64,000 bases of DNA from Podarcis vaucheri (Eukaryota). Below, in pieces: positions 25,734-64,000 of the stretch (positions within the stretch are counted from its first letter, which is position 1; each line of letters starts with the position of its first letter). The notes below the pieces were generated by a model. The model was not told the origin of the DNA and ran no database searches. It worked only from the letters and a program-made list of their open reading frames with translations. Location of the stretch: the NCBI GenBank assembly GCA_965113315.1, contig OZ220377.1, one strand, 5' to 3'. The translations under genes were made by a program, and so were the position numbers.

Positions 25734-26362
25734 CTTGGTTACTGGCGCGGGCGTCGAGCGGGATTTCCCCTTCTCAGACTATCGCGAGATCTCCGTCACT
25801 AATGGCAACAGCGTCCTTTATATATATATATACCGGCCCTGAAAAGCCATAGAGATTGAAGAGGGGCGTATAAACGTTTGTTCGCAACTTCCGGGGGACA
25901 TTCGGAAGCGGCCATTGGCTGAGAGTCCCTTGTAGAGCTACGGCATAGTAGAGTCATTGTTGCTATTTCCAAGCTCACACTTTTAAGACGCACCCGACAT
26001 AGTGTTCACCATAGATGTATAAAGGATAGAGACACCACTCAGCGTTCGTGGAAAAGCATGAATTTTCGAAGCCTTCAAAAATAAGTCTTATCTTTTCCAA
26101 GAGCGCTGTCTGATTTGAGGCGACAGCGCTCTTGAAAAAGATAAAACTTATTTTTGAAGGCTTCTAAAATTCATTTTAAAAGTTGCCTCAGGTTTAGGCG
26201 GCGTGTCGTGACGTCATTCCCACGCGCCAGAAAGGGGAGAGGGTAAATACAAAAGCAACCCCACCCCCTGAATGAAGCGACCGCGCTTGCTCGCGAATCA
26301 CTTCTGTGTGGGCGGCTTTGCGCGTGAGGTGGAGCTTGGGAAGAAAGACAAGGCCCCTGAAT
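25734..26362. promoter_or_regulatory. Bidirectional CpG-island promoter shared by MRM3 (-) and GLOD4 (+)
   Basis: Head-to-head ATGs with 629 bp between them; YY1-type GCCGCCATCTT over the MRM3 ATG, TATCGCGAGA (BANP/ZBTB33-type) 25780-25789, ETS ACTTCCGG 25887-25894, ATTGG 25914, CRE TGACGTCA 26209-26216. Confidence 0.85.
26058..26174. repeat. Long inverted repeat (53-bp arms, 11-nt loop)
   Basis: Arms 26058-26110 and 26122-26174 pair at 50/53 positions. Confidence 0.95.
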
Positions 26363-26452
26363 ATGAAGGCTCGGCGGGCGCTGCATTTCGTGTTCAAAGT
26401 GGGCGACCGAGCCGAGACCGCGCGCTTCTACCGGGATGTACTGGGCATGCGC
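26363..26452 (+). CDS. GLOD4: Glyoxalase domain-containing 4, exon 1
   Basis: [30 protein letters not shown]|gtaagt. Confidence 0.95.
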
Positions 26453-30226: not shown

Positions 30227-30363
30227 ATCCTGTGCTGAAGGTTACTTTGGCCGTGTCCAGCCTGCAGAAATCTGTGGACTACTGGTCCAAGTTCCTGGGC
30301 ATGAAGCTGTACGAGAAGGACGAAGACAAGCAGAAGGCTCTGCTCGGCTATGGGGATAACCAG
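30227..30363 (+). CDS. GLOD4: GLOD4 exon 5 (137 nt)
   Basis: cccag|[46 protein letters not shown]|gtgagg. Confidence 0.95.
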
Positions 30364-30495
30364 GTGAGGCTGAAGGGGCACTAGGCAGCTGAGGGGATCC
30401 TCAGGGCATCTTCCAGGTATATGTGGCAGAGACAGGGGCCACCATTCCAGCTTCTGCAGTGGTTGGGCGTCTATGGCTCTCAGTACCCAGCACTG

Positions 30496-32569: not shown

Positions 32570-33552
32570 GTGAGTGCTGCCTCAAAACAGCTTTCGTGCC
32601 TCCAATGTAGGTCAGGAACGAGGGCTTTGTGGCCAGGTGTCGTTGGACTCCAACTCCCATCAGCCCCGGTTGCAGCAGGGCCAATGGTCAGGGGAGATGG
32701 GAGTTGTAGTCCATCAGCACCTGGAGGGCCACAGGGTCCCCTATCCCTGATCCCACGAAGCAGCATTCCCTACTTGCGTGCAAGAGGTGAAGGAATGCCT
32801 CTGTTTAGCAGAGGGAGTCCTTCCTGAGAGAGGAGAATTCCTCTTCTTGGAGCAACGATTGACAAAGCTGTAGACCTCCAAATGCAGGACTTCCGACTCC
32901 TACCATCTCTATGGGTTCCTGTATATGTAGTGCACGTGGAGGGAAATTTTTAATACATTGCAGAGTTCCCAAAAAATAAACCAGAGGCAATTTCATCCAG
33001 CAAAGCTTTACTGCTGCTGAAGGCAAATGAGCACAATGGTCACAAATCCAATACATTCAGGATTGGCACAGTCCATAAGAAATCCAGTTACAGCAGTCTT
33101 ATCTTAAGCTTAACAATAACTTATAATAAGACTAAACCTTAACACTATAGCATACAGAACAGAGCACCACACCAGAACAGAGAGAAAAGAGAAAGTGTGA
33201 AACAGCACCCAGGCTCCTCCTGGCCTATTATAGTCAAAATGACATTGACAAGAAAGGATAAGGAGCCAGTTTAAACCAGCTGTGCTCAGCTTCCCAGAAG
33301 GAATAACCCAAACACCAGAAACCACCCGCCTGTTTCTTTCACGTAGAAAGAAGCCTTCCAGAACACTTGAACTAAGCAGAACAGGAAAGACCTCTACACA
33401 TCAGATCAATACCTTCTGTACTAAGAAATGCAAACTGACAGTAGATCCCCCAAATAATTGCCAGCTCCCTTTAGTGACTGTGACTGCTGTGGCAAATGTC
33501 GCCTTCCCTTCAGTTGACCCCTTTGCTGTTCCTCCTCTTCCACCTGCTTTAG

Positions 33553-33639
33553 GATGGCCACGAGATCTGCTTCGTCGGGGACGAGGCTTTCAGAGAGCTT
33601 TCCAAGGTGGACCCAAATGGTGGGAAACTCTTAGACGAG
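33553..33639 (+). CDS. GLOD4: GLOD4 exon 8 (87 nt)
   Basis: tttag|[29 protein letters not shown]|gtgagt. Confidence 0.95.
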
Positions 33640-33743
33640 GTGAGTCTCCCCCTTTCAACGTTTATTCCAAATTTAAGGTGATCCAAGGGCTCAGCTCCTC
33701 TCCACCGCGATGTGGCTCACGGCTTGAATCTTCTCTCCTGCAG

Positions 33744-33809
33744 GCGATGGCGGCCGACAAGAGCCACGAATGGTTTGCCAAACGTAACACCCCAAAGCCT
33801 TCCGCTTAG
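33744..33809 (+). CDS. GLOD4: GLOD4 exon 9 (last); total CDS 897 nt = 298 aa
   Basis: ctgcag|AMAADKSHEWFAKRNTPKPSA-TAG; ATTAAA at 33935. Confidence 0.95.
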   Translation, partial: AMAADKSHEWFAKRNTPKPSA

Positions 33810-34147
33810 CCCGGGTGGGGAATCGTCTGGTTGGCAGGGTCTTTTGTGGGGACCTGGGATAGGAGGCCGTCGGCCATACTTTCTGCGCACGTGGATGAGT
33901 AGTGCTGCTATCGCTTGGAACTCCTTCTCTTTTAATTAAATTAATTATGGTTTCCTTCCTTCCTCTTTTGAATCTGTTCCTTTCTTGTGTGTTCATGGAG
34001 TGGGGGGAGGCCTCTTGGCTGCTACGGATGCAGCCTGCAAAAGTGTGATGATTCGCCAAAGCAAAACGCCGCTGCATGTCACTGTCCTGTCCAGTGTTTC
34101 AAATGCACACACCCCTTTGAGAACTTTTCTGTGCGACTCAGCCAGCA

Positions 34148-34191
<44 letters not shown>

Positions 34192-34809
34192 TCTATCCTA
34201 CTGTGCATTCCTGCTGTCTAAAAGGACAGGCCCCCTTCCCTCAAATTGTTGGGACCGTACTACTCTATCTTGCAAAATGTATGTTTTTAAGTGCCGTAAT
34301 TTTACTAAATTCTCTGCACCCAGAAATTCTAGCAGACCGTTGCCAGAAAACAAATGTCAGAGCCCCTGTCTTGCATACAGAAGCTCCCACAATTTGATCC
34401 TCAGCACCTCCAGGTTAAAGGGGTTAGTTAGCGGCAGGTGATGAGATCTGAAACATGGGTGGCAGCTGCCAGTCAGAGCAGGCAGCAGTGGCCTTGATGG
34501 AGAAAGTGTCTGACCTATAGAAGGCTGCTCCCTAAGCTGCTTAAGCACATCAGGAAAAGGTTTAAGGAGCAGGTTTGGTCTCCTTTTTAGGCCACCACCC
34601 CCACGGCGGTACAGTCCTCCAACCCTAGCAGGGCTGTACCACAAAACTAAGCCCAGCGCACCGCTCCCCATTTGAAACGACAAAATACCGCAAGGTGACA
34701 CTGGAGAGCTTCTCAAGGGGCCCTTTATTGCCTTAACCGCCAGAGATCGTCGGGGCGGAAGATGACTAAAGCAACCTGGAAGCCGGATCCTGTGCAGCCC
34801 TCTCCGCAG

Positions 34810-35043
34810 TCATCTACTTTCCTTCTTCTCCAGCTCCTCCACCTTGGTGATGTGGACCTCCTCAGTGGCCTCCTCCTCCGAAAGGTCTTGGTGGTCGCTC
34901 CCTGCCTCCCTTGTCGCTTTGGAGTTTAGGTCGTGGCTGGCCAGGCAGGGGGCGGCCCTCTTGTGCAGCAGATCCATGACGGAGACGGACCCTTTCACTT
35001 GTGAGACCAGGCCAGTGGCTTTCTCAAGCTCAGCCTGTGACAT
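34810..35043 (-). CDS. DBIL5: Divergent intronless acyl-CoA-binding protein (ACBP/DBI family) ORF, DBIL5/ELP-like, 77 aa; functional gene or frame-intact pseudogene
   Basis: MSQAELEKA...HKRA...SKATREAG...HITKVEELEKK aligns with ACBP MSQAEFEKA...YKQA...GKAKWDAW...YINKVEELKKK; A at -3; minus-strand AATAAA at 34724-34729; position and orientation between GLOD4 and GEMIN4 match mammalian Dbil5/DBIL5P. Confidence 0.75.
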   Translation of the reverse strand: MSQAELEKATGLVSQVKGSVSVMDLLHKRAAPCLASHDLNSKATREAGSDHQDLSEEEATEEVHITKVEELEKKESR

Positions 35044-35214
35044 GTTGTCATGAGCGCGCCTTCCTTCTGACCTGTGCACAGGGCCTTTCTCGAGATCAGG
35101 TGCAAGTCATGCTTGAAACGGCTGTCCCTGTGTTCCATACAGAGGGTAGGAAAAGGAGCCTATTATTATTATTATTATTATTTATTATTAAGGCGAGCAT
35201 CGCCTTACCCCATA

Positions 35215-35682
35215 CAGTGGTACCTCGGGTTAAGTACTTAATTCGTTCCAGAGGCCCGTACTTGACCTGAAACTGTTCTTAACCTGAAGCACCACTTTAG
35301 CTAATGGGGCCTCCCGCTGCTGCCGCGCCGCCACCACGCGATTTCTGTTCTCATCCTGAAGCAAAGTTCTTAACCTGAAGCACTATTTCTGGGTTAGCAG
35401 AGTCTGTAACCTGAAGCGTATGTAACCTGAGGTCTAGATACGAACGGGATCCGTTCCAGAGCCCTGTTCGCATCTAGAAGCAAACGTAACTAGCGATGGC
35501 ACGTCTGCGTATGCGCATGTCGTTTTTTGCCGCTTCTGCGCATGCGCGTGACGTCATTTTGAGCGTCTGCGCATGCGCAAGCGGCGAAACCCAGAAGTAA
35601 AGCGCTCTGTTACTACCGGGTTGCCGCGGAGCGCAACTCGAACGCGCTCAACTCGAAGCGTATTCAACCCGAGGTATGACTG
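35215..35682. mobile_element. Composite Tigger-like MITE (family A left part fused to a GCGCATGCGC-rich right part)
   Basis: TA|CAGTGGTACCTCGGGTT ... AACCCGAGGTATGACTG|TA. Confidence 0.8.
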
Positions 35683-37099
35683 TATATGCCCTCTTGGCTG
35701 TTTTGATCTGCAGAACTGGCCCTGTGACGGGTGCCACATAACGGCCATTTGTAAGAACTCAAGCTTTTAGTGTGGCAGCACTTACACTTTGGAACTCCCC
35801 GCCTAGTGATACGAGGCGGGCATTTTCACCATACTCTTTTCGGCGCTTGCTAAAAACATTTTTGTTTAGACAAGCCTAGCCAGATATTTGGAATGCTGAT
35901 GCGTGTTCAGTTTGTTGCGAAATGTTTTGAATGCTTTAATTGTTTTTACTTGTAATCTTATTCTTTTTGTAAACTGGGGATTTCTACAACCAAGTGGGAT
36001 ATACATTCTATGGAATAATAATAATATAATTTAATTAATAATTAATTAACTTGCCCTTCACTCTTAACGGCCCAGGGTTACAGTAATTAAAACACAATAT
36101 TAAGGACAGTTTAAGACGACATAAGAGTCACAGCAGTGAGGTTGTTCTAATAATATAATGATGACAATAACAGTGTATGTTTTGCTCAGAGCAGTATTAC
36201 AGAGCAGTGATGAATTGCAGGAGGACCTTTCATGGATTTAAAAATGCATCGCCTATAATTATCTTCTGACACAGCACCCCTGTAAGGTGTCTGAGTTCCA
36301 GAGAGGTAAAAGGCCCCCTCGCTTCAGATTCCCAAAGCTGTAATTCTAGTGTCACCATATTTCAAAAAGTGAAAATCTGGACAGAAAAGCTGTTGAGCCT
36401 TTTTTCTTTGCAATGCCTTAAAGAAATTGGTAGCCTACAGAGACATGCGCTTGTCTGGATGGTGTCGGGCCAATCAGCATGGCCGATGGTCCTAGGACCT
36501 AGACTACCCGAGGCGAACAATGGGAGGGGGAACCCTGTGGCCTTCCAGCTGTGTCACTACAACTCCCATGAGCCCCAACTAAAATGGCCAGTAGCGAGGG
36601 ATGATGGGCATTGTAGTCTATCAGCATCCGGAGACTCCCCACTCCTTTCATAGCTGTCAACATTTCCCTTTTCTTGCGAGGAATCCTATTCGGAATAAGG
36701 GAATTTCCCTTTAAAAAAGGGAAAAGTTGACAGCTATGCACTCCTTTAGAGTTTCGGATCGGGACCGGGGCAGCCTAGGATTAAATCTCCACTCACCCCA
36801 AAATACAGCGGGACTGAGCGCCGACCCGTATGCGTTCTATTTGCTTGCAAACGCTTCTGCGGTGCCACCATGCAGACAGAAATGCAAGAAAGCACTCTGC
36901 ACATGCCCAGAGACGCCTCCCTCAAGCTATCCCCAGGAGGCGAATTAAAAGATGACAGGTGCGAAACGTCGAGAGCTGGAGGAGAATGTCTCCTGCCCCA
37001 ATATTTCCAAACCCCGGCGCCTTTCTCGCTTCGCAGTCGGGGAGCCCCGGCGCTTGCTACTCCTAGTAAAGAAGGAGGAAGAGAAAGAGCCCCCCCCCA

Positions 37100-37650
37100 A
37101 AAAAAACTCCATCCAGGAGCTTTTTTTTTTTTACCAGCCGGTGTAGGCGGGCAGCAGGATGGCTCGGCGACCCTTGCGCCGTGCAGTGTTGCGCAGGAGC
37201 CTGCAGAGGTAGCTGTTCCGACGGCGCCTCTGCTTGCGCAGCCCCGTCTCGCTGGCTGGAAAGGGATCCGCCCAGGGACCGAGAGATCTGGGAGGAGGAG
37301 CCGGGATCCACCGCGCCCGCGCGGTTGGAAAGCAACTGCAGCGCCGGCGGCGGCGTGGCGCAATTTGGCGAGCCTGCCCGTGCGCCCCTCTCCAAAGCTT
37401 TGTGCCGTGCGCCCTGAGCGCACAATGGACGGCGCCGTCGCCGTCTCCAACCGCGGAGCCCCGGAGGGCGCCGTCGCCCGAGCCGCTGCCGCCGTCGAGG
37501 ATCCCGGCGCGGGCAGGCGGCGGAGGAGCCCCGCTCTCGGCCATGCCGCCTTCCCCTCGCCTGCCGGAGCCGGGCTAGGAGGCAGCCCCGAAGCCATGGA
37601 GCTAGGTAGTTGGGCGGCTGCTGGCCTTCCTCTCTCGCTTCCAGCTACTC
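37100..37650. promoter_or_regulatory. CpG island / GEMIN4 promoter and 5' exon
   Basis: Very GC- and CpG-rich stretch ending at the GEMIN4 start codon; boundaries approximate. Confidence 0.75.
37596..37605 (+). CDS. GEMIN4: GEMIN4 exon 1 coding part (ATGGAGCTAG; MEL-G)
   Basis: gccATGG Kozak, donor |gtagtt; equivalent to the human 10-nt MDL-G first exon; phase 1 joins exon 2 in frame. Confidence 0.88.
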
Positions 37651-38835
37651 GGAGTAGACCCTTTTGGAATGAACGGAGCCCACTTGGTCGAGGCTGTGCG
37701 TTTCAGGGGGTTCTGCACTGAGTAGGACTTGGGTTTTCTTAAGCGGCCTTTCCTGCCAAGGAGCGCATTTGTAAGAAATCGGGCTTTTAGCGAGGGCAAC
37801 ACGCTCACTTTTCAACTCGCTTCCTACTGCCCTCTTTTCAGAGCCTGGGGGGAAAAAAAACATTTTAAGGAAGCCCACCCAGAAGTGTAGCCAGTGGACG
37901 TGTGTTTTAAGCGTATCGTCTATTTTAACTCTCTTCTAGACATTTTAAATAGCTGCTTTTAACCGTACAATGTTATTGTTTTTTTTGTGTGTGTGAACTG
38001 TTTTGAGGTGTGTGTGTATACACACCCACACACACGTGTATATGTGTGGGGGTGTGTGTATACACACACACAAAAATCAAGCAGTTTTATTAAATTAATC
38101 AAAATGAATAGGGAAGTTTCTGGTTTGAACCCTCAGCCCACTTAGTGGCCTTCCAGGCATGGCCAAACTCGGCCCTCCAGATGTTTTGGGACTACAATTT
38201 CCGTCATCCCTGACCACTGGTCCTGTTAGCTAGGGATGATGGGAGTTGTAGTCCCAAAACAGCTGGAGGCTTAAGCAAAGCCAGGTGTCTCTCTCGCTCA
38301 ATCACTGCATCCCTGGAATACGGGCTGATTATAAGACTGACTTTGCCTTGCCGGCAGGGTTGTTGTGATTGTCAGCTAGATGATGACAAAGTAGTTGATG
38401 GTGGTTATTAAGGGAATTACTGTTACCATCCTTCTTTCCTTGCCTATCTGCTTTTCTGAAGAAACGATGGTGCCCTTCAGAGGGGAGAAGAACTTTGCAC
38501 ATGTTCAGAAGCATTGATAAGTTTCCTTCTTCTCTAAAGCAGACAAAACAACGCTGTTGCCTTTCAGAAGGCACTCTGCCCGAGCTCAGGTGATCCTTTT
38601 CCCCTTTAGTTCCTTTTAAGATAAAATAAAATTCTGCCACACTCTGCAGCAGGTGTGCTCAATGGCATTATCTGTTTTCCTTATTTTATTGGGGAAAACT
38701 TGTCTTCCACTTAACTGTAAGCAAAGTCTCGTAAGGCGTTTACCAAAGATAACCTCACCCCACATTAAAAATATACATTAAAATGATAGGTAGAAATAAA
38801 AAAAGGTGTTTCTTTAAAAATTGAAAATATAATTA

Positions 38836-39520: not shown

Positions 39521-40127
39521 TAAAACTGGCTGTTAAGCTGAAACGGATTCAAATGTATGCCCCCCCCCCCGGAACACTCGCCTAAATGGAAATAGTTTTT
39601 GGCAGGTGGCAAAAAGAATGCAGCTAAGGCTTTGTCTAACATCAAGAGGCGGGAAGTTCCAAAGTCTGGATGCTGCCATCCTGAAAAATCTATTCCATAC
39701 AAGTGCAAAACAACTATTATGTGGCACTTTTACTGCTGCCATTTCCATAGATCAAGACTGTTGAAAGGGTACAGGCGGTTGTCACAGAAGGGTCTTGGGT
39801 TCGAATCTCCATGCTTCCAGCTGAAAGGATCATGGAGTAGGTGGGAAAGTCTCAGGCTCAGCAGCAGGGCATCTGAGGTTCATTCTCCAGCAACTCCAGA
39901 TAGGGCTGGGAATTCGCCTCTCCCTGTAGCCCTGGAGAGCGGCTGCCAATCAGTGTGGGCAGTACTGAGCTACTTGGACCCAGTGGTGTGACCCTATATA
40001 AGGCAGCTTCCAATGTGTCTCTGCTCAGGAGCGAAGAGTGCTGCTGCCAGTCAGAGTGGGCCATATAGGGCTGGATGGATAAATACAGGTCTTTGCCTTC
40101 TCAGTATGCCTGTCTTTGCTCAAACAG

Positions 40128-43100
40128 GGCCGGTGACCATCTGCGGAGAACTGAGTGTGTTGCACGGGGGGTTCCTGCTGGCTTCCGGCATCTGCCACCC
40201 CAAACCGCTGTCGGAGTTGGCCAAGTCCGACTGGCCCCAAGTGGGGAAGCCCATCATCGACGCCCTGGAAGAGATCTGCACGTCCCATTCGTCGTACCCA
40301 CCCGAACCCGGCGCCTGGAAGCGGAAAGCCGCTGTGGTCCTCTGGTCCAAGATCCTCCTCTCGTCGCCCTCGGTCTCCGCCAACCAGAGATGGAAGGAAG
40401 ATGTCTTCTTCTCTGCCAGCAACATGATCCCGGAGATCAACCACACTGTCCTCTTTGAGCTCTTCAAGGCTATCAACGCCCCACGGCTGTTCGCCCAGCT
40501 GCTGCTGGTGTTGCCGGAACACGTCTGTCGGAAGGAGCTGGAGACCTTTGTGGGGTACGTGGCCAACGAGACTTCCCCGGCCGACGTCTCGTTCTTCTTG
40601 GACGTTTGGTGGGAAATCCTGAAGCATCAGGAGGGACAGGAGGACAGGCTGATGCTCCTCTTCCGCTCGGTGTCCCACCAATATCTCTCGGAGCCTGACG
40701 AGGTGGGGCAGCCCCCAAAGAGATTCAAGAGCGACGCCCCGTCTTTGCTAGGTTTCTCCGTGGCCGCTGGCGTCCTCCCGGTCTTGACCGAAGGGTTGAA
40801 GCTCATCAAGGAGAACGTCAACCCAGCCAAGATGAAATGCCACGCTCTCGCCAACCTGGCAGACGTGCTGTCCATGTCGCTCGCGGCGCAGCGCGAGGCG
40901 GACTCGCTGCCGGTCCAGGCTTATTTGGAGAAGATCTCCTCTGTGGTAACACTCTGGAGCAGCGACTGCGATGGTCGATACAGCAAGCAGGAACTGAGTG
41001 AGCAGGTGAAAGAGGCGGAGAGGAGCATCAGCTTGCTGAACGCCACGAGGCCACTGGGCGAAGCGCTGCCCGTCGATGTGGGCTTCCTGCGGGCCTTGCT
41101 GGAGGAGTGGTCCCCCGCTCTGCAGGAGCTGCTCAACGACCCCCAGCAGATCTGCTACGAGAGCTACCGGCTCCTGGAGGCCCTGGCTTCTCTCAAGAAG
41201 AAGCTGGCGGACTGCTACAAGCAGGAGGACCACAACAGAGATGCTGCGCAGGAGATGTCGGCGCTGGGTGACCTCATCGCAGGCTTCTTGAAGAAAGTGA
41301 GCCCTGAGTTGCGGGGCAAGAGTGCCGGTGGCGACCTCCTGCCGTCGGTGGCCATGGTGGTCATTGAGAAAAAGATGGACAGGCACCAAGAGATGTGCTC
41401 CCTTTTTGCTTCGGAGAAAAGCTGGGCATTTACAGACGAGTGGGTCGCTTGCCTCGTTCGGAACAAAGACCTGTTCCGGGAACCAGAGCTGGTCTCGAAA
41501 TTGCTGGAGACGTTGGCGTCTGCCGACCCCTCAGGGAAGCAGGACCAGCAAGCCACGGTGGCGAGGGTCTTGCTCGAGTGCTACATGGACCTCCCCTTGC
41601 CTGATAAGAACAAAGTGATTTCGGGCGTTTTGGCTTCTTGGGGCAGGCGAGGCCTCTCTAAGGTGTCTCCGGCTTTCTCGGAGGGGTTCCAGGAGGACCT
41701 CAACGTGGCCTTCAACCAGATCATCCAGAGCGCCTCCGGAGAAGGCTTGAAGAAGGCCGTGGCTTCCGTGTCCCGGCTGGTCGTCCTCAACCCGGAGGCC
41801 ACCATCAAGAAAATGAGCAACTTAGCCGTGGCCAATCTGGGGACGCACCAGTTCTTGGCGGAGATCCTGTGTTCCTTCCCGGCTCTGAGCTTCCGGGAGA
41901 CTCTGGACTCGGAGGAAGCGCCCATCAGCCTGCTGCTGGGGTGCCTGAAAGAAGCCGTCTGGGACCGCCTCTCGTCGCCCAAGGAGAAGGAGCAGTTCCT
42001 GGAGTTCTTGGTTTATCTCTTGCAGCCGAGCGGAGCAAGGCCTCTCCTCTCTCCGGCAGAGGTGACGCAGGCCCTCGTCCTCCCTTTCCTGAAGGCGGAC
42101 TCCCCTTGCGTCGAGCTGTGCTTGCAGATCCTCAACAAAGTCCTGAAAGTGCTGCTGCCCGCCGAGGAGGGCAGCTGGCTCCACAGCTGCCACCCTTTCC
42201 CTCTCCTCTTCTGCCTCTGCAAGCTCCTCGACGGCTTTGCCCAGTACTGGCACGAGCCGCAAGACCAGCACTGCCTCTCCTTGGAAGCCAAGGACTTGGT
42301 GGCCGCCAACCTAGCTCAGCTCTGCGATGCCCTCTTGGCGCAGAAGGACTCCCTGTCGCCCGAGCTGTGGGCGCAGTCGGTGGCTTGGTTGCACAAGAAG
42401 GCGGCTTCCCTGGACTGGACCGTTGGCCTCCGCCTGAAGAGCATCTATGGGGAGCACTTCAAGAACGAGGTCCCGGCCACGCTCTTTGAGGTCTGCAAGC
42501 TCCCGGAGGGAGAGTGGACGTCCTGCCCGCTCCCGAATTACGGCGCGGGCAGCGGCCTGCTGGCCTGGATGGAGTGCTGCTGCGTCTCTGCCGCCTTGCG
42601 GGAGGAGATGCTGGCGCTGCTCACGGTCAACGTGGACAACCCTGAGGAGGTCAACCTCTTCAGCAAAGGCTTCCTGGTGGCCCTGGTCCAGGTCTTCCCC
42701 TGGTGCAGCCACAGCGAGTGGCGGAGGCTGGTTGGCGTGGTTCAGAGCCTCTTAGACCAGGAAGTGCTGTACGTGCCTTATTCGCTGGAGTACGTCCAGT
42801 TCCTGCCCTTGCTGAACTTCCGCCCCTTTGCCTACCATCTCCAGTTCTCGGTTCTTCTCCTGAGGGCCTTCCAGTTCCTCTGCGGCGCCAGCGGCTCCAC
42901 CTGGCTGCCGGCGGAGGCGTGGAGGCACGTGGCCCGGCTGTACTGCCTGGCCGTGTCTGATCTGCTGGGTTCGGTCAAGGGCATTGCCCGGAATCAGTGG
43001 CAGCCGGCCCAGGAGAAGAACAACGTGACACGAGAGCTGTCCTTCGTCTACGTCCAGATCTTCTGCCACACCCTCCACGTGGCCGCCATGCTGCCAGACG

Positions 43101-43294
43101 ACGGCACGGGCGAGCCCCTCCTCCTCCTCTCCCTGGAGATCCTCTCGCAGTACGAGATGCTCTATGACGCCGACGAGGCCCTCGGCAGCGCCCTGAGGAA
43201 GGCCAACGAGAGGCACTTCCTGGAGTCCATCGCGGAGAACGTCACCAACAAGGAGCTGCGAACGATGCTCCTGCAAAAGCTCCGGAAGCTGTGA
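40128..43294 (+). CDS. GEMIN4: Gem-associated protein 4 (SMN complex), giant exon 2; total 1058 aa
   Basis: aaacag|GG; GPVTICGELSVLHGGFLLA...HPKPL...DWPQVGKPI...HFKNEVPATLFEVC...NPEEVNLFSKGFLVAL...YSLEY; stop TGA; AATAAA at 43435-43440. Confidence 0.96.
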
Positions 43295-48089: not shown

Positions 48090-48413
<324 letters not shown>

Positions 48414-60300: not shown

Positions 60301-61699
60301 TGAAATGTCTGTCCTTCCAATAAACATAAGCCTTTCTTTGGGGATCTGGCTTCGGAACGATCTTGCTTCTCTTGTCCTGTTCCTTGACGACATTTCCATC
60401 CCAACTTTTCACCAGACCAAGCTGTTCCCAACTTCCCCCACATAACATACTGAGCATCCCATAGCGAAAGCTTCCTGCCATCTTTCCCATGACTCCGGTG
60501 GCTGAATTTGCACAAACACAGATCCTCCCCCTCTGGTTCCTAAATTGCAATTTTATCATTACAGTGGTACCTCGGGTTAGGTACTTAATTCGTTCCGGAG
60601 GTCCGTACTTAACCTGAAACTGTTCTTAACCTGAAGCACCACTTTAGCTAATGGGGCCTGCCGCTGCACTGCCGGAGCACAATTTCTGTTCCCATCCTGA
60701 AGCAAAGTTCTTAACCTGAAGCACTATTTCTGGGTTAGCGGAGTCTGTAACCTGAAGCGAATGTAACCCGAGGTACCACTGTATATGAATAATATTTATG
60801 TTTTTAAGAAGAAAATGTGCCATGAAGAGATTCACTCACTCGACATATGCAGCCTTCTACAGAGCAAAACCATCCGTAAATTTGACTCAGTATTGCCTGC
60901 ACTGACTGGCAGCCCCTCTCTCTTAGAGTTTCAGGGGGCCCTACTGCATGCACTGACCTGCAGCAGCTCCCTGGGATTTTACAGAGGGAGCCTCTCAGCC
61001 CTGACAGGAGATGCTATTGGTGATTGAACCTGCAGCCTTCTGCATGCAAGCTCAGTATGGACTGCACTGACTGGCAGCAGCTCTCCAGAGTTTCAGGGGG
61101 TTGAACTTGAGATGCTGGGGGTTGAACTTGAGACCTTCCGCATGCAAAGCAGATGCTCTGTTGCTAAGCAACAGGAGACATTCCCTGTGGCTCCCTAAGG
61201 ATAGATAGTCTCTTGCCTGCCTCGCAATCTTCTCTTTCATCTGCACAGGAATGTTCCTGCCTTATCGCTGCCCTGCCCTTAAACTCCTTTTGAAAGCCTT
61301 TGCCCTGCCCTTAAACCAGTGTTGCTGTTCTTAGGGAGGCAGGGAGAGACTCCCCTTCCTCCCATGGGCCTTAAGGGGTCCTCTTCCCTCCCCCCCCTCC
61401 GCAAGCCCCTCTGGATCCCCCAAACAGAAGAGGCAAAAAAGCAAATCTAGAGCAATTGCATTTCCCAAAGCCCGCCCGCCGAGGAACCCTGTGCGGCTCG
61501 TAAGCAGCCGGCTTTGCTCTTCAAACCACAGGCAGCCGAGCCTGGATGGAGAAGAGGTTTCTGAAAGTTCGCGCCAGCTGCTCGCTCTCCCTCGATCCCG
61601 GCCACGGAGAGCTGGATCCCTCCAGCCGGGGAAGGGAGAGGGAGAAAGAGACAAAGTCTAGGGGTAGCATCCAAAAGCTACACACATGGAAGTTAATAG

Positions 61700-62770
61700 A
61701 TCGCAGTGTGAGGCTTGTTGAGGCCGGCGGGTCTACTCTGAGTCGGGCTTACGCCGGATCCGACCCGGCTTCCCGCGCCTGCAAGAACTTTGCGCCGGCT
61801 TTTCATTCAACTCCATCCGGTTGCATAAGAGGATCCGGGTGGAATGCCTTCCTTTTTCCTCCGCCTCTCCCCCCTCCCCGCACCTCTGGCTTCCCGTCGG
61901 TCTCCCTCCCTCTCCCCCCCCCCCTCGGTGCCAGCCGGTACCTGCCGCTGAGGAGGATCCGGTCCTTGAGGCTCCATGCCGGCGCCAGCCAGCGCAGGCT
62001 GCGGACGGAGACTGCGAAAAGCCCCGGGAAGAAGAGAGCTCCGAGGGCCACCGTCTGCCACATCCCTTCCCCGGCTCCCCGCGAGCCTTTCCCCGGCTGC
62101 CGGCCGCCCAGGCGCTCCGGGGATCTGCTCCGGAGACAGAAGAGGCGCTCGCCAACGGGACGCCCGCCTCGAACGCCGTGTTTGTCAACAGCAGGCCGGG
62201 CGGCGGCGGCGGCGAAAGAGAAGGTGGAGCTGCCGCCGCCGTCGTCGTCGGGCGGGAGAGATAGTGAGAGAGTGATGGAAGGGGCGGGCGGTGGGCTGCC
62301 TTCTGCAGCGGCCGGCCCTTCCCTCCCCCAGAGCCGGTAGGAGCGTCAATGTGGGGTGCAGGGAAGTCGAGGAGGAGGAGGATCCTGTGTCGTCCGTCCC
62401 CTCGAAATAAATAAATTAAATAAATCTCCCGCCCCCTCGGGGCTGAACCCTTTGCAAGATCGGTTGCCGCTGCCCCGAACTGATGGAACGCCGGCAGCCT
62501 GAACGTTCCGCGCGATGGAACGCTCGGCGGCCTCAACGTTCCAAACCCCGCCGCGCGAAACGTTCCAACGTTCCACGGAGCTTTGAAGAAGTTGCTCCGC
62601 TCCCCAGGCGTGGGCGGGGCCGTAGAGTTCACGGAACGTTGACGGCGCGCTCCGAACCGCGTGGACTGCGGCCGCCGAGACTTCCGAGCGTTCCACCCCT
62701 GCCGCGAACACTCCGTTCCATTTTCCCCGCTGGATGGTTTCCGGGAAAGGGGGGTATACCGGGTGGGCGT
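61700..62770. promoter_or_regulatory. CpG island / TLCD3A promoter
   Basis: CpG-dense, GC boxes (GGGGCGGG 62281, GGGCGGGG 62612); boundaries approximate. Confidence 0.75.
61942..62063 (-). CDS. TLCD3A: TLCD3A (FAM57A) exon 1; total CDS 789 nt = 262 aa
   Basis: MWQTVALGALFFPGLFAVSVRSLRWLAPAWSLKDRILLSG-AG|gtaccg, inside a CpG island; synteny next to GEMIN4. Confidence 0.92.
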
Positions 62771-64000
62771 TGGGATAGATCGCAGTGTTATTTGGTGCAT
62801 AATAAGGAAGAGGCGCCTCTGGTGTTGGGCAAACAGGTTTGTAGGCTTATTTCGTTTATTTTTAAATGAATGCACCCCCCGCAACAAGAGCCTCCCTCTA
62901 ACCTGGCGTGTTTTAGTTTCGTTTTTTAAAACAAGGATGGCTAAGATGTACTTAAAAGAAAAGAAAAATACAGGAAAGGGGAGCGTTTTCCAGCCCGAGG
63001 GCCGCATTCCCTCATGTTGGCGGGGGCGGGCCAGGACAATGGTGGGTGTGGCTAGGGGCAAAAGGGGGTGGGGTGTTGGATGTGACTGCATTTCAGCGAA
63101 GCAAAGTTCTCTACGCACAGACCTCTCCATCGTTCATTCTCCATCCAGGCAAGAAAGAGACATACCGTAAGCACCTTTAAGCGACAAATCCCAGTCGGGC
63201 AAAAGCGCCAAAGGAGGGTATGAAGCGTGGCTGGTGGGGGCGTGGCCTACAGAAAAGGGGGCGTGGCCTAAGGAGCATCCGGAAGGCTGTACTGTACAGT
63301 GGTACCTCGGGTTACAGACGCTTGAGGTTACAGACTCAGCTAACCCAGAAATATTACCTCGGGTTAAGAACTTTGCTTCAGGATGAGAACAGAAATCGTG
63401 CAGGAGGCCCCATTAGCTAAAGTGGTGCTTCAGGTTAAGAACAGTTTCAGGTTAAGTGCTTAACCTGAGGTACCACTGTACTTGGCCCTGGGCCTAAAGT
63501 TCCCCATTCATCCTCTTATCACCCAGGGTTGCCATATTTCAGAAAGGACCCGATCCTTTATAACTGCTGTTCTTCTAATCCCTGAAAAGGAGATGGTTGT
63601 GATATCTCCCTTCTTAGGGCTAGGGTGGAGATGGCCTGAGTTAATATTTAAAACTGTTGAGGTGGATGGCGAAGGCGGGTAAGCTGTCAAGTTCGATTTG
63701 GATCTCGAAACCACCTACAGATCTTGCAAAATGTGGATTAGAAGGCAATGGGGAGTGGAAAGGCTGCCTGCTGTGCCAGAGATCATAGAGTGTAGCCTAG
63801 AAAAGGGAATGCTGGAATATAAAACTCTATGCTTCGGGAGGACTGAACGATGGGCACAGGTCTTGCTATCCAAACACTCGCTGTACAAAAATTCACTTAT
63901 CCAAATCAGTACCCAAACACACTGCAGCTTCAGATATCCAAACAGCCTGCATATATAGTGCCTTATTTTTTGTGTTGTTGGTCCATGGCAGTCATTTCAC

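Follow-up and report, generated by a model that had tools for sequence, protein, structure and literature searches.

An open reading frame between GLOD4 and GEMIN4 of the lizard Podarcis vaucheri, a probable remnant of the testis acyl-CoA-binding protein gene DBIL5/ACBD8

A minus-strand open reading frame (ORF) of 77 codons, located between GLOD4 and GEMIN4 of the lizard Podarcis vaucheri, has the codon structure of a coding sequence and encodes a product devoid of the aromatic residues that are conserved in acyl-CoA-binding proteins (ACBPs). The ORF was identified in a window of 64,000 nucleotides, which is the whole stretch of DNA that was analyzed. We put at about one in two the probability that it is the positional descendant of the testis ACBP paralogue DBIL5/ACBD8, has given up acyl-CoA binding and is most probably decaying. 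This would locate a remnant of the gene in squamates, from which it had been reported as not retrievable.

ELP/DBIL5 was named "ACBD8" by Islinger et al. 2020 (PMC7057175). ACBD8-like proteins have been found in turtles and crocodilians, placing the duplication early in amniotes (PMC7057175). In squamates, birds, monotremes and insectivores, by contrast, the same study could retrieve no full-length ACBD8, a distribution that speaks for several losses. What is new here is a squamate remnant at the syntenic site, with its frame open. The synteny supports the published idea that the testis ACBP copy arose before the mammal/sauropsid split; the first-pass annotation of this DNA had also proposed that the copy may predate the divergence of mammals and reptiles, a proposal that thus gains support but is not new, since it is contained in PMC7057175. 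The ORF also serves as a test case of a gene that lacks its fold-defining residues and either survives as a different small protein or is a relic that stays open by luck.

Results

Gene neighborhood and synteny

The local gene order is TLCD3A, GEMIN4 (plus strand), the ORF (minus strand, divergent from GEMIN4) and GLOD4 (plus strand, convergent with the ORF). The exons of GLOD4 extend on the plus strand from ~26306 to the stop codon at 33809. The series starts with exon 1 (~26306–26400) and includes an exon (30232–30381) that matches the human GLOD4 structures (PDB 3zi1 and 9csj) with E-values of 1e-17 to 1e-18. The last exon (33744–34132) is coding up to 33809 and is followed by a 3′ UTR that reaches at least 34132. 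Exon 1 of GEMIN4 (37345–37606, plus strand, ATG at 37425) was located by tblastn with lacertid GEMIN4 proteins and is covered by an RNA contig of the same extent; it is divergent from the ORF at a distance of 2.3 kb. The main coding exon of GEMIN4 (40085–43294, plus strand) is 92–97% identical to lacertid GEMIN4 (96.7% for Podarcis muralis, 96.5% for P. lilfordi, 95.1% for P. raffonei and 92.5% for Lacerta agilis). On the far side of GEMIN4, an exon of TLCD3A (FAM57A) is present on the minus strand (48093–48356), with a Pfam TLC domain at an E-value of 1.3e-12.

We take the full mammalian arrangement to place DBIL5 in the GLOD4-GEMIN4 interval, head-to-head with the latter gene. A DBIL5-like position and orientation of the ORF, between these two genes and divergent from GEMIN4, had been proposed from the sequence and is borne out by the mapped exons. 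The human gene order is FAM57A-GEMIN4-DBIL5P (PMC6029155), and the neighbors of Dbil5/DBIL5P are kept between mouse and human (PMC6842137). The sole intron of rat ELP directly precedes the ATG and so leaves the coding sequence undivided (PMC2711954). The coding sequence of the lizard ORF is also a single exon, which agrees with the earlier description of an intronless coding sequence as in mammalian Dbil5.

The region between the ORF and GEMIN4 exon 1 is rich in repeats. A very high-copy interspersed repeat occupies 35153–35900 on the minus strand, with many loose contig ends at 35212/35213 and 35433; its (AAT)n tail (35153–35195) ends 110–150 nt upstream of the ATG of the ORF. More very high-copy repeats are found at 36320–36460 and 36602–36742, and together these elements take up much of the 2.3 kb. 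In all four runs, the contig depth summed over the high-copy repeats amounts to 1e5 to 8e6. Scans of 33500–37700 and 35100–36900 for Rfam families and tRNAs gave no match, and the repeat has no tRNA-like head. Upstream of the GEMIN4 start codon, seven consecutive letters (36817–36823) are replaced as a block in congeners E and F; the block sits in a stretch (36741–37067) that is covered by RNA contigs at low depth. An RNA contig of congener E carries an in-frame CGC insertion at 37432, just past the GEMIN4 start codon.

On the GLOD4 side, the only poly(A)-like signal near the 3′ UTR is an ATTAAA close to 33940, though contigs reach at least 34132. An RNA contig of congener E skips 36 nt of this UTR (33990–34027), with GT..CG at the ends, and a deletion is a likelier cause than an intron. 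Every contig breaks off at a (GATA)n microsatellite (34146–34193). Elsewhere in the window, a 465-residue ATG ORF (61733–63130, minus strand) has no Pfam match at E-values up to 1 and is overlapped by long plus-strand ORFs (61546–62340 and 62661–63170). A GC-rich artefact and an unannotated element are both conceivable.

Architecture of the ORF and its product

The ORF, with its stop codon, occupies 34810–35043 on the minus strand. It starts with an ATG at 35043 in the context acaacATG, with the A at −3 of a Kozak sequence, and its 77 codons run to 34813, followed by TGA at 34812–34810. An AATAAA (34729–34724, minus strand), a candidate poly(A) signal, lies 80 nt 3′ of the stop. A candidate splice acceptor (cacAG followed by g, 35072–35073, minus strand), proposed from its sequence, is located 28 nt 5′ of the ATG; it is crossed unspliced by RNA contigs that reach as far as 35126–35130. 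The DNA contig depth in a congener is 24.9 over the ORF and 24.7 over its flanks, such that the ORF is single-copy. A multi-copy or transposable-element origin was rejected on the same grounds.

The product has MSQAELEKA as its N-terminus and HITKVEELEKKESR as its C-terminus. It contains no Phe, Trp or Tyr at all and is rich in Glu, Ser, Ala, Leu and Lys; its net charge is about −6. The codons at the positions of interest are ctt (Leu6), cac (His27), aca (Thr44), agg (Arg45), ggg (Gly48) and cac (His64). The first-pass annotation was accurate in all of these respects: the coordinates, stop codon, spacing of the AATAAA, termini, absence of aromatic residues and named codons were each recovered on inspection of the sequence.

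ACBPs conserve a set of core and ligand residues (Phe5, Tyr28, Tyr31, Trp55, Trp58 and Tyr73, in the numbering of the bovine protein), together with Lys32 and Lys54. The aromatic positions are occupied in the ORF by Leu, His, Arg or Thr, Gly and His, and both CoA-phosphate lysines appear to be kept (in HKRA and SKAT). The ORF is also ~10 residues shorter than ACBP, in the region of helix 2. A single-sequence AlphaFold2 prediction consists of two long helices with a mean pLDDT of 69 and a pTM of 0.24, compared to the bundle of ~86–90 residues of ACBP. Judged by the absence of a profile match and of the aromatic core and ligand residues, the product would fail as a functional member of the ACBP family. 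Since every aromatic core and ligand residue and ~10 residues of helix 2 are gone, it is predicted to be unable to bind acyl-CoA as a four-helix bundle.

Sequence similarity to ACBP

HMMER against the Pfam ACBP profile (PF00887), a check whose failure the first-pass annotation had listed among the results that would refute its claim, gave no match to the whole ORF or to pieces of it at E-values up to 10. The only Pfam entry listed for the ORF is a sub-threshold CagY_I repeat (E 0.007–0.03), which is typical of helices rich in Glu and Lys. Among 5.8 billion protein clusters, a word-indexed search returned no candidate, although GEMIN4 of five lacertids is present there; these clusters contain no protein model for the ORF. 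No matches were obtained with phmmer against 1.8 billion representatives, and the ESM Atlas gave no usable match. The "recognition" score of the ORF from a protein language model is 2065, compared to a value of 2300 that is reached by 91% of proteins of known families.

A search of the PDB (177,635 distinct sequences, E-values up to 10) returned two ACBPs only, with E-values of 0.11 and 0.44. Residues 36–74 of the ORF are aligned with residues 47–84 of ACBP, with ~15 of 39 positions identical, including I-KVEEL-KK. The same two ACBPs are matched by the C-terminal 42 residues alone, the E-values for ACBPs ranging from 0.11 to 0.66 overall. The N-terminal 35 residues alone matched the unrelated OsmY at an E-value of 0.36, which places E-values of this size at noise level. 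Outside the PDB alignment, the N-terminal motif MSQAE-EKA agrees with ACBP at eight of nine positions from the initiator methionine onwards. The ACBP-like N- and C-termini that the first-pass annotation had recognized are thus present, and in the right order.

As the Pfam profile does not match, ACBP descent rests on synteny together with weak pairwise similarity. The noise-level match is to the very family that the gene position predicts, and the N-terminal match, the order, the spacing and the size all fit; we therefore consider it very likely that the ORF descends from an ACBP gene, and likely that this gene was ACBD8 specifically.

Coding signal

The length of the ORF is by itself within chance, as the window contains 86 ATG ORFs of at least 77 residues. 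Its composition is distinctive. G makes up 0.43 of codon position 1 and A makes up 0.40 of position 2; the GC content at third positions is 0.75, compared to a GC content of ~0.50 in the flanks, and T accounts for 13.7% of the sense strand, compared to 23–27% in the flanks. A codon log-likelihood was trained on the adjoining GEMIN4 exon and scored against each sequence's own base composition. The ORF scores +0.235 bits per codon in frame, and −0.64 and −0.95 in the other frames. It ranks second among 119 control ORFs of 60–110 residues, behind a true exon of TLCD3A/FAM57A (the one with the TLC domain), and the score at rank 3 is already negative. Thus, the ORF bears the signature of a real coding sequence, present or past, and is not a chance ORF.

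In shuffles of the ORF's own composition, the probability of obtaining no stop codon is 0.066, that of obtaining no aromatic residue is 0.059, and that of both is 0.003. Survival of the frame was also simulated under neutrality, with a transition:transversion ratio of 2:1, indels at 5–10% of the substitution rate and one-fifth of the indels in frame. The ORF remains intact with a probability of 0.06–0.17 at 0.1 substitutions per site, 0.005–0.03 at 0.2 and below 0.004 at 0.35. The ORF is far more diverged from ACBP than 0.1–0.2 substitutions per site, most of the positions conserved in ACBP having changed. Taken together, the simulation and the shuffles fit badly with a long, purely neutral history. 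Either selection kept the frame for most of its history, with the ACBP function abandoned, or the ORF is a lucky survivor; the latter is not negligible, because only an open frame would have been noticed in the first place.

Comparison with congeners

A 501-nt stretch around the ORF is present in DNA runs of six species, with shares of sampled words from 1.0 to 0.39, which corresponds to a divergence of ~3% or less. The simulated probability of an intact ORF at ~3% divergence is 0.44–0.57, such that congeners would be expected to show an open frame even if the gene were dead. No indel interrupts the ORF in the contigs of congeners D and E, whose gaps are all located outside it, at 34356 (6 nt omitted) and 34579 (a G added). 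Among the listed differences within the ORF, those common to D and E are at 35002, 34866, 34844 and 34816. Two of these are synonymous (35002 at Ser14 and 34816 at Ser76) and two are non-synonymous (34866, Thr60 versus Ala; 34844, Lys67 versus Arg), the count being of at least four differences. Over whole contigs, the divergence from congener E is 2.0–4.9% for the ORF and 2.8–5.7% for its 3′ flank, and the ORF is not clearly more conserved than this flank.

All eight listed differences in 34768–35002 are A or T in the window and G or C in three congeners, four of them (34768, 34773, 34787 and 34793) within 26 nt just past the stop codon. This pattern fits GC-to-AT decay in the lineage of the window, if the congeners hold the ancestral state. 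The segment has the appearance of a lineage-specific run of GC-to-AT transitions.

RNA coverage

The 501-nt stretch is present in all six small RNA-type runs of congener E, which come from three studies. Two RNA-type runs and two DNA runs were mapped to 33500–37700 as contigs, which do not give RNA strand, transcript ends or level. A 104-nt GLOD4 intron (joint 33637 to 33742, GT..AG) is removed in both of the mapped RNA-type runs, and in one of them a 4.6-kb contig departs from GEMIN4 exon 1 at 37606; both runs are therefore truly RNA. One run (X16) covers the ORF with a contig at 34488–35126 at a depth of 9.3, compared to 142 for the GLOD4 contig. The other (X19) covers it with contigs at 34200–34579, 34599–35012 and 35003–35130 at a depth of ~4, compared to 34.6 for GLOD4 and 69.5 for GEMIN4. 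The RNA depth over the ORF in congener E is thus 6–12% of that of the GLOD4 contig. These contigs are unspliced, pass 220–500 nt beyond the AATAAA and break only at microsatellites. Comparable low depth is seen on other intergenic pieces, for example 8.9 at 36741–37067.

As the contigs of the GLOD4 3′ UTR reach at least 34132, read-through from GLOD4, antisense to the ORF, also fits the coverage; it and weak divergent transcription from the GEMIN4 promoter are equally good explanations. A bounded, spliced or strand-resolved transcript of the ORF was not seen in the unstranded contigs of the two mapped RNA runs. We conclude that there is reproducible low-level RNA over the ORF, in which no compact mRNA is seen; a testis-specific mRNA could have been missed, as the runs carry no tissue label. 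The "hidden microgene" of the first-pass annotation is not supported by these results, with neither a bounded or stranded transcript in the RNA contigs nor a protein model in public collections. The proposal that the region is nothing other than GLOD4 3′ UTR was rejected because it leaves the codon structure unexplained, though such a UTR may still account for the RNA coverage.

Discussion

The readings weighed here differ in where the ORF came from and in whether its protein is still made. Least probable among them is an ORF with no ACBP ancestry, whose similarity would be the noise of a charged, helical sequence rich in Glu and Lys. The lack of a Pfam ACBP match, the noise-level ACBP E-values with OsmY (0.36) matched by the N-terminal piece, the CagY repeat (0.007–0.03) and the 86 window ORFs of equal or greater length are all in its favor. 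However, the family matched is exactly the one predicted by synteny, out of 177,635 sequences; the agreement at eight of nine N-terminal positions begins at the initiator methionine; the order, spacing and size fit ACBP; and codons are arranged as in a real exon. Also improbable is that the ORF arose independently of DBIL5, as a processed retrocopy of lizard DBI or ACBD7 inserted by chance between GLOD4 and GEMIN4. Such a copy would account for the single-exon coding sequence and for an N-terminus that, within the limits of the PDB alignment, is closest to DBI. Yet the same interval and orientation as mammalian DBIL5 would then be a large coincidence, no A-run follows the AATAAA, no flanking direct repeats or target-site duplication are present, the divergence is far too high for a recent copy, and ACBD8-like genes are reported in turtles and crocodilians (PMC7057175).

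The more serious competitor shares the ACBD8 ancestry and differs in the present state of the gene: a living, repurposed microprotein that lost binding long ago and is selected as a small acidic peptide, helical or disordered, and that, by analogy with DBIL5 in mammals, may be testis-specific and fast-evolving. We regard this reading as possible but doubtful. It would explain why the frame is open despite a divergence that is seldom survived neutrally, why the codon structure is frame-specific (rank 2 among 119 ORFs) and why the loss of aromatic residues exceeds that in composition-matched shuffles. The good AATAAA and Kozak context agree with it, as do two congeners free of indels and the presence of the stretch in six of six congener RNA-type runs. 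The same observations (the open frame, exon-grade codons, A at −3, AATAAA, absence of indels and all six RNA-type runs) weigh against decay. Against present function, however, stand the missing public protein model in five annotated lacertids and RNA that is weak (6–12% of GLOD4 depth), with no bounded, spliced or stranded transcript seen. The absence of a predicted fold, the low language-model recognition and the high-copy repeat 110–150 nt 5′ of the ATG point the same way. So do the substitutions, which look neutral, with two synonymous and two non-synonymous changes listed and an ORF divergence (2.0–4.9%) that is not clearly lower than the 2.8–5.7% of the 3′ flank. The either/or posed by the first-pass annotation, a repurposed microprotein or a decaying gene, remains the right framing, and the decaying DBIL5/ACBD8 descendant is the reading that we prefer.

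According to the preferred reading, the single-exon testis ACBP paralogue DBIL5/ELP/ACBD8 would have given rise to the ORF at the syntenic site in Podarcis. The descendant would have kept the MSQAE-EKA N-terminus, the I-KVEEL-KK of the last helix and the two CoA-phosphate lysines, and would have lost ~10 residues of helix 2 and all aromatic core and ligand residues. Its protein would no longer be needed, and transcription of the gene would at most be weak and unbounded. A late or gradual loss of constraint would explain why the frame is still open.

Should the decaying gene be no more than a pseudogene, it would add an ordinary detail to ACBP evolution. The simulation and the codon signal make a relic that is open by luck less comfortable than usual. 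If the ORF encodes a true microprotein, the reported squamate "loss" of ACBD8 would instead be a divergence so great that the gene is not recognized, and the new function would have nothing to do with lipids. That an ACBP-derived gene has shed its acyl-CoA-binding core and been kept in lacertids as a translated, acidic, helical microprotein, with divergence in place of loss, is in our estimate unlikely.

Comparison with known systems

ACBP/DBI (ACBD1; human ACBP, PDB 2cb8 and 2fj9) is the only solved protein matched by the ORF, with which it shares the N-terminal motif. The ~15 identities in 39 positions fall in the last two helices, at an E-value (0.11) that is not significant alone. DBI itself is a housekeeping gene with several exons and a different locus, and its core and ligand Phe, Tyr and Trp residues are all replaced in the lizard ORF.

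The closer counterpart is DBIL5/ELP/ACBD8 of mammals, which also lies beside GEMIN4 on the GLOD4 side, is divergent from it, and has one coding exon and ACBP-type termini. Both products are small, with ~87 residues in DBIL5 and 77 in the lizard ORF. The lizard ORF differs in having no aromatic residues, in having ~10 residues fewer and in failing the ACBP profile. In rodents, the DBIL5/ELP protein is an acyl-CoA binder found in abundance in spermatids, whereas the lizard ORF is known from its sequence and from RNA contigs. The DBIL5 family has been inactivated repeatedly, in primates, other mammals, squamates and birds (PMC7057175, PMC6842137). Human DBIL5P is a pseudogene, and the lizard ORF is unlike it in that its frame is still open. 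The ACBD8-like proteins of turtles and crocodilians, which would be the sauropsid orthologues of the ORF, are predicted to be full-length ACBPs (PMC7057175).
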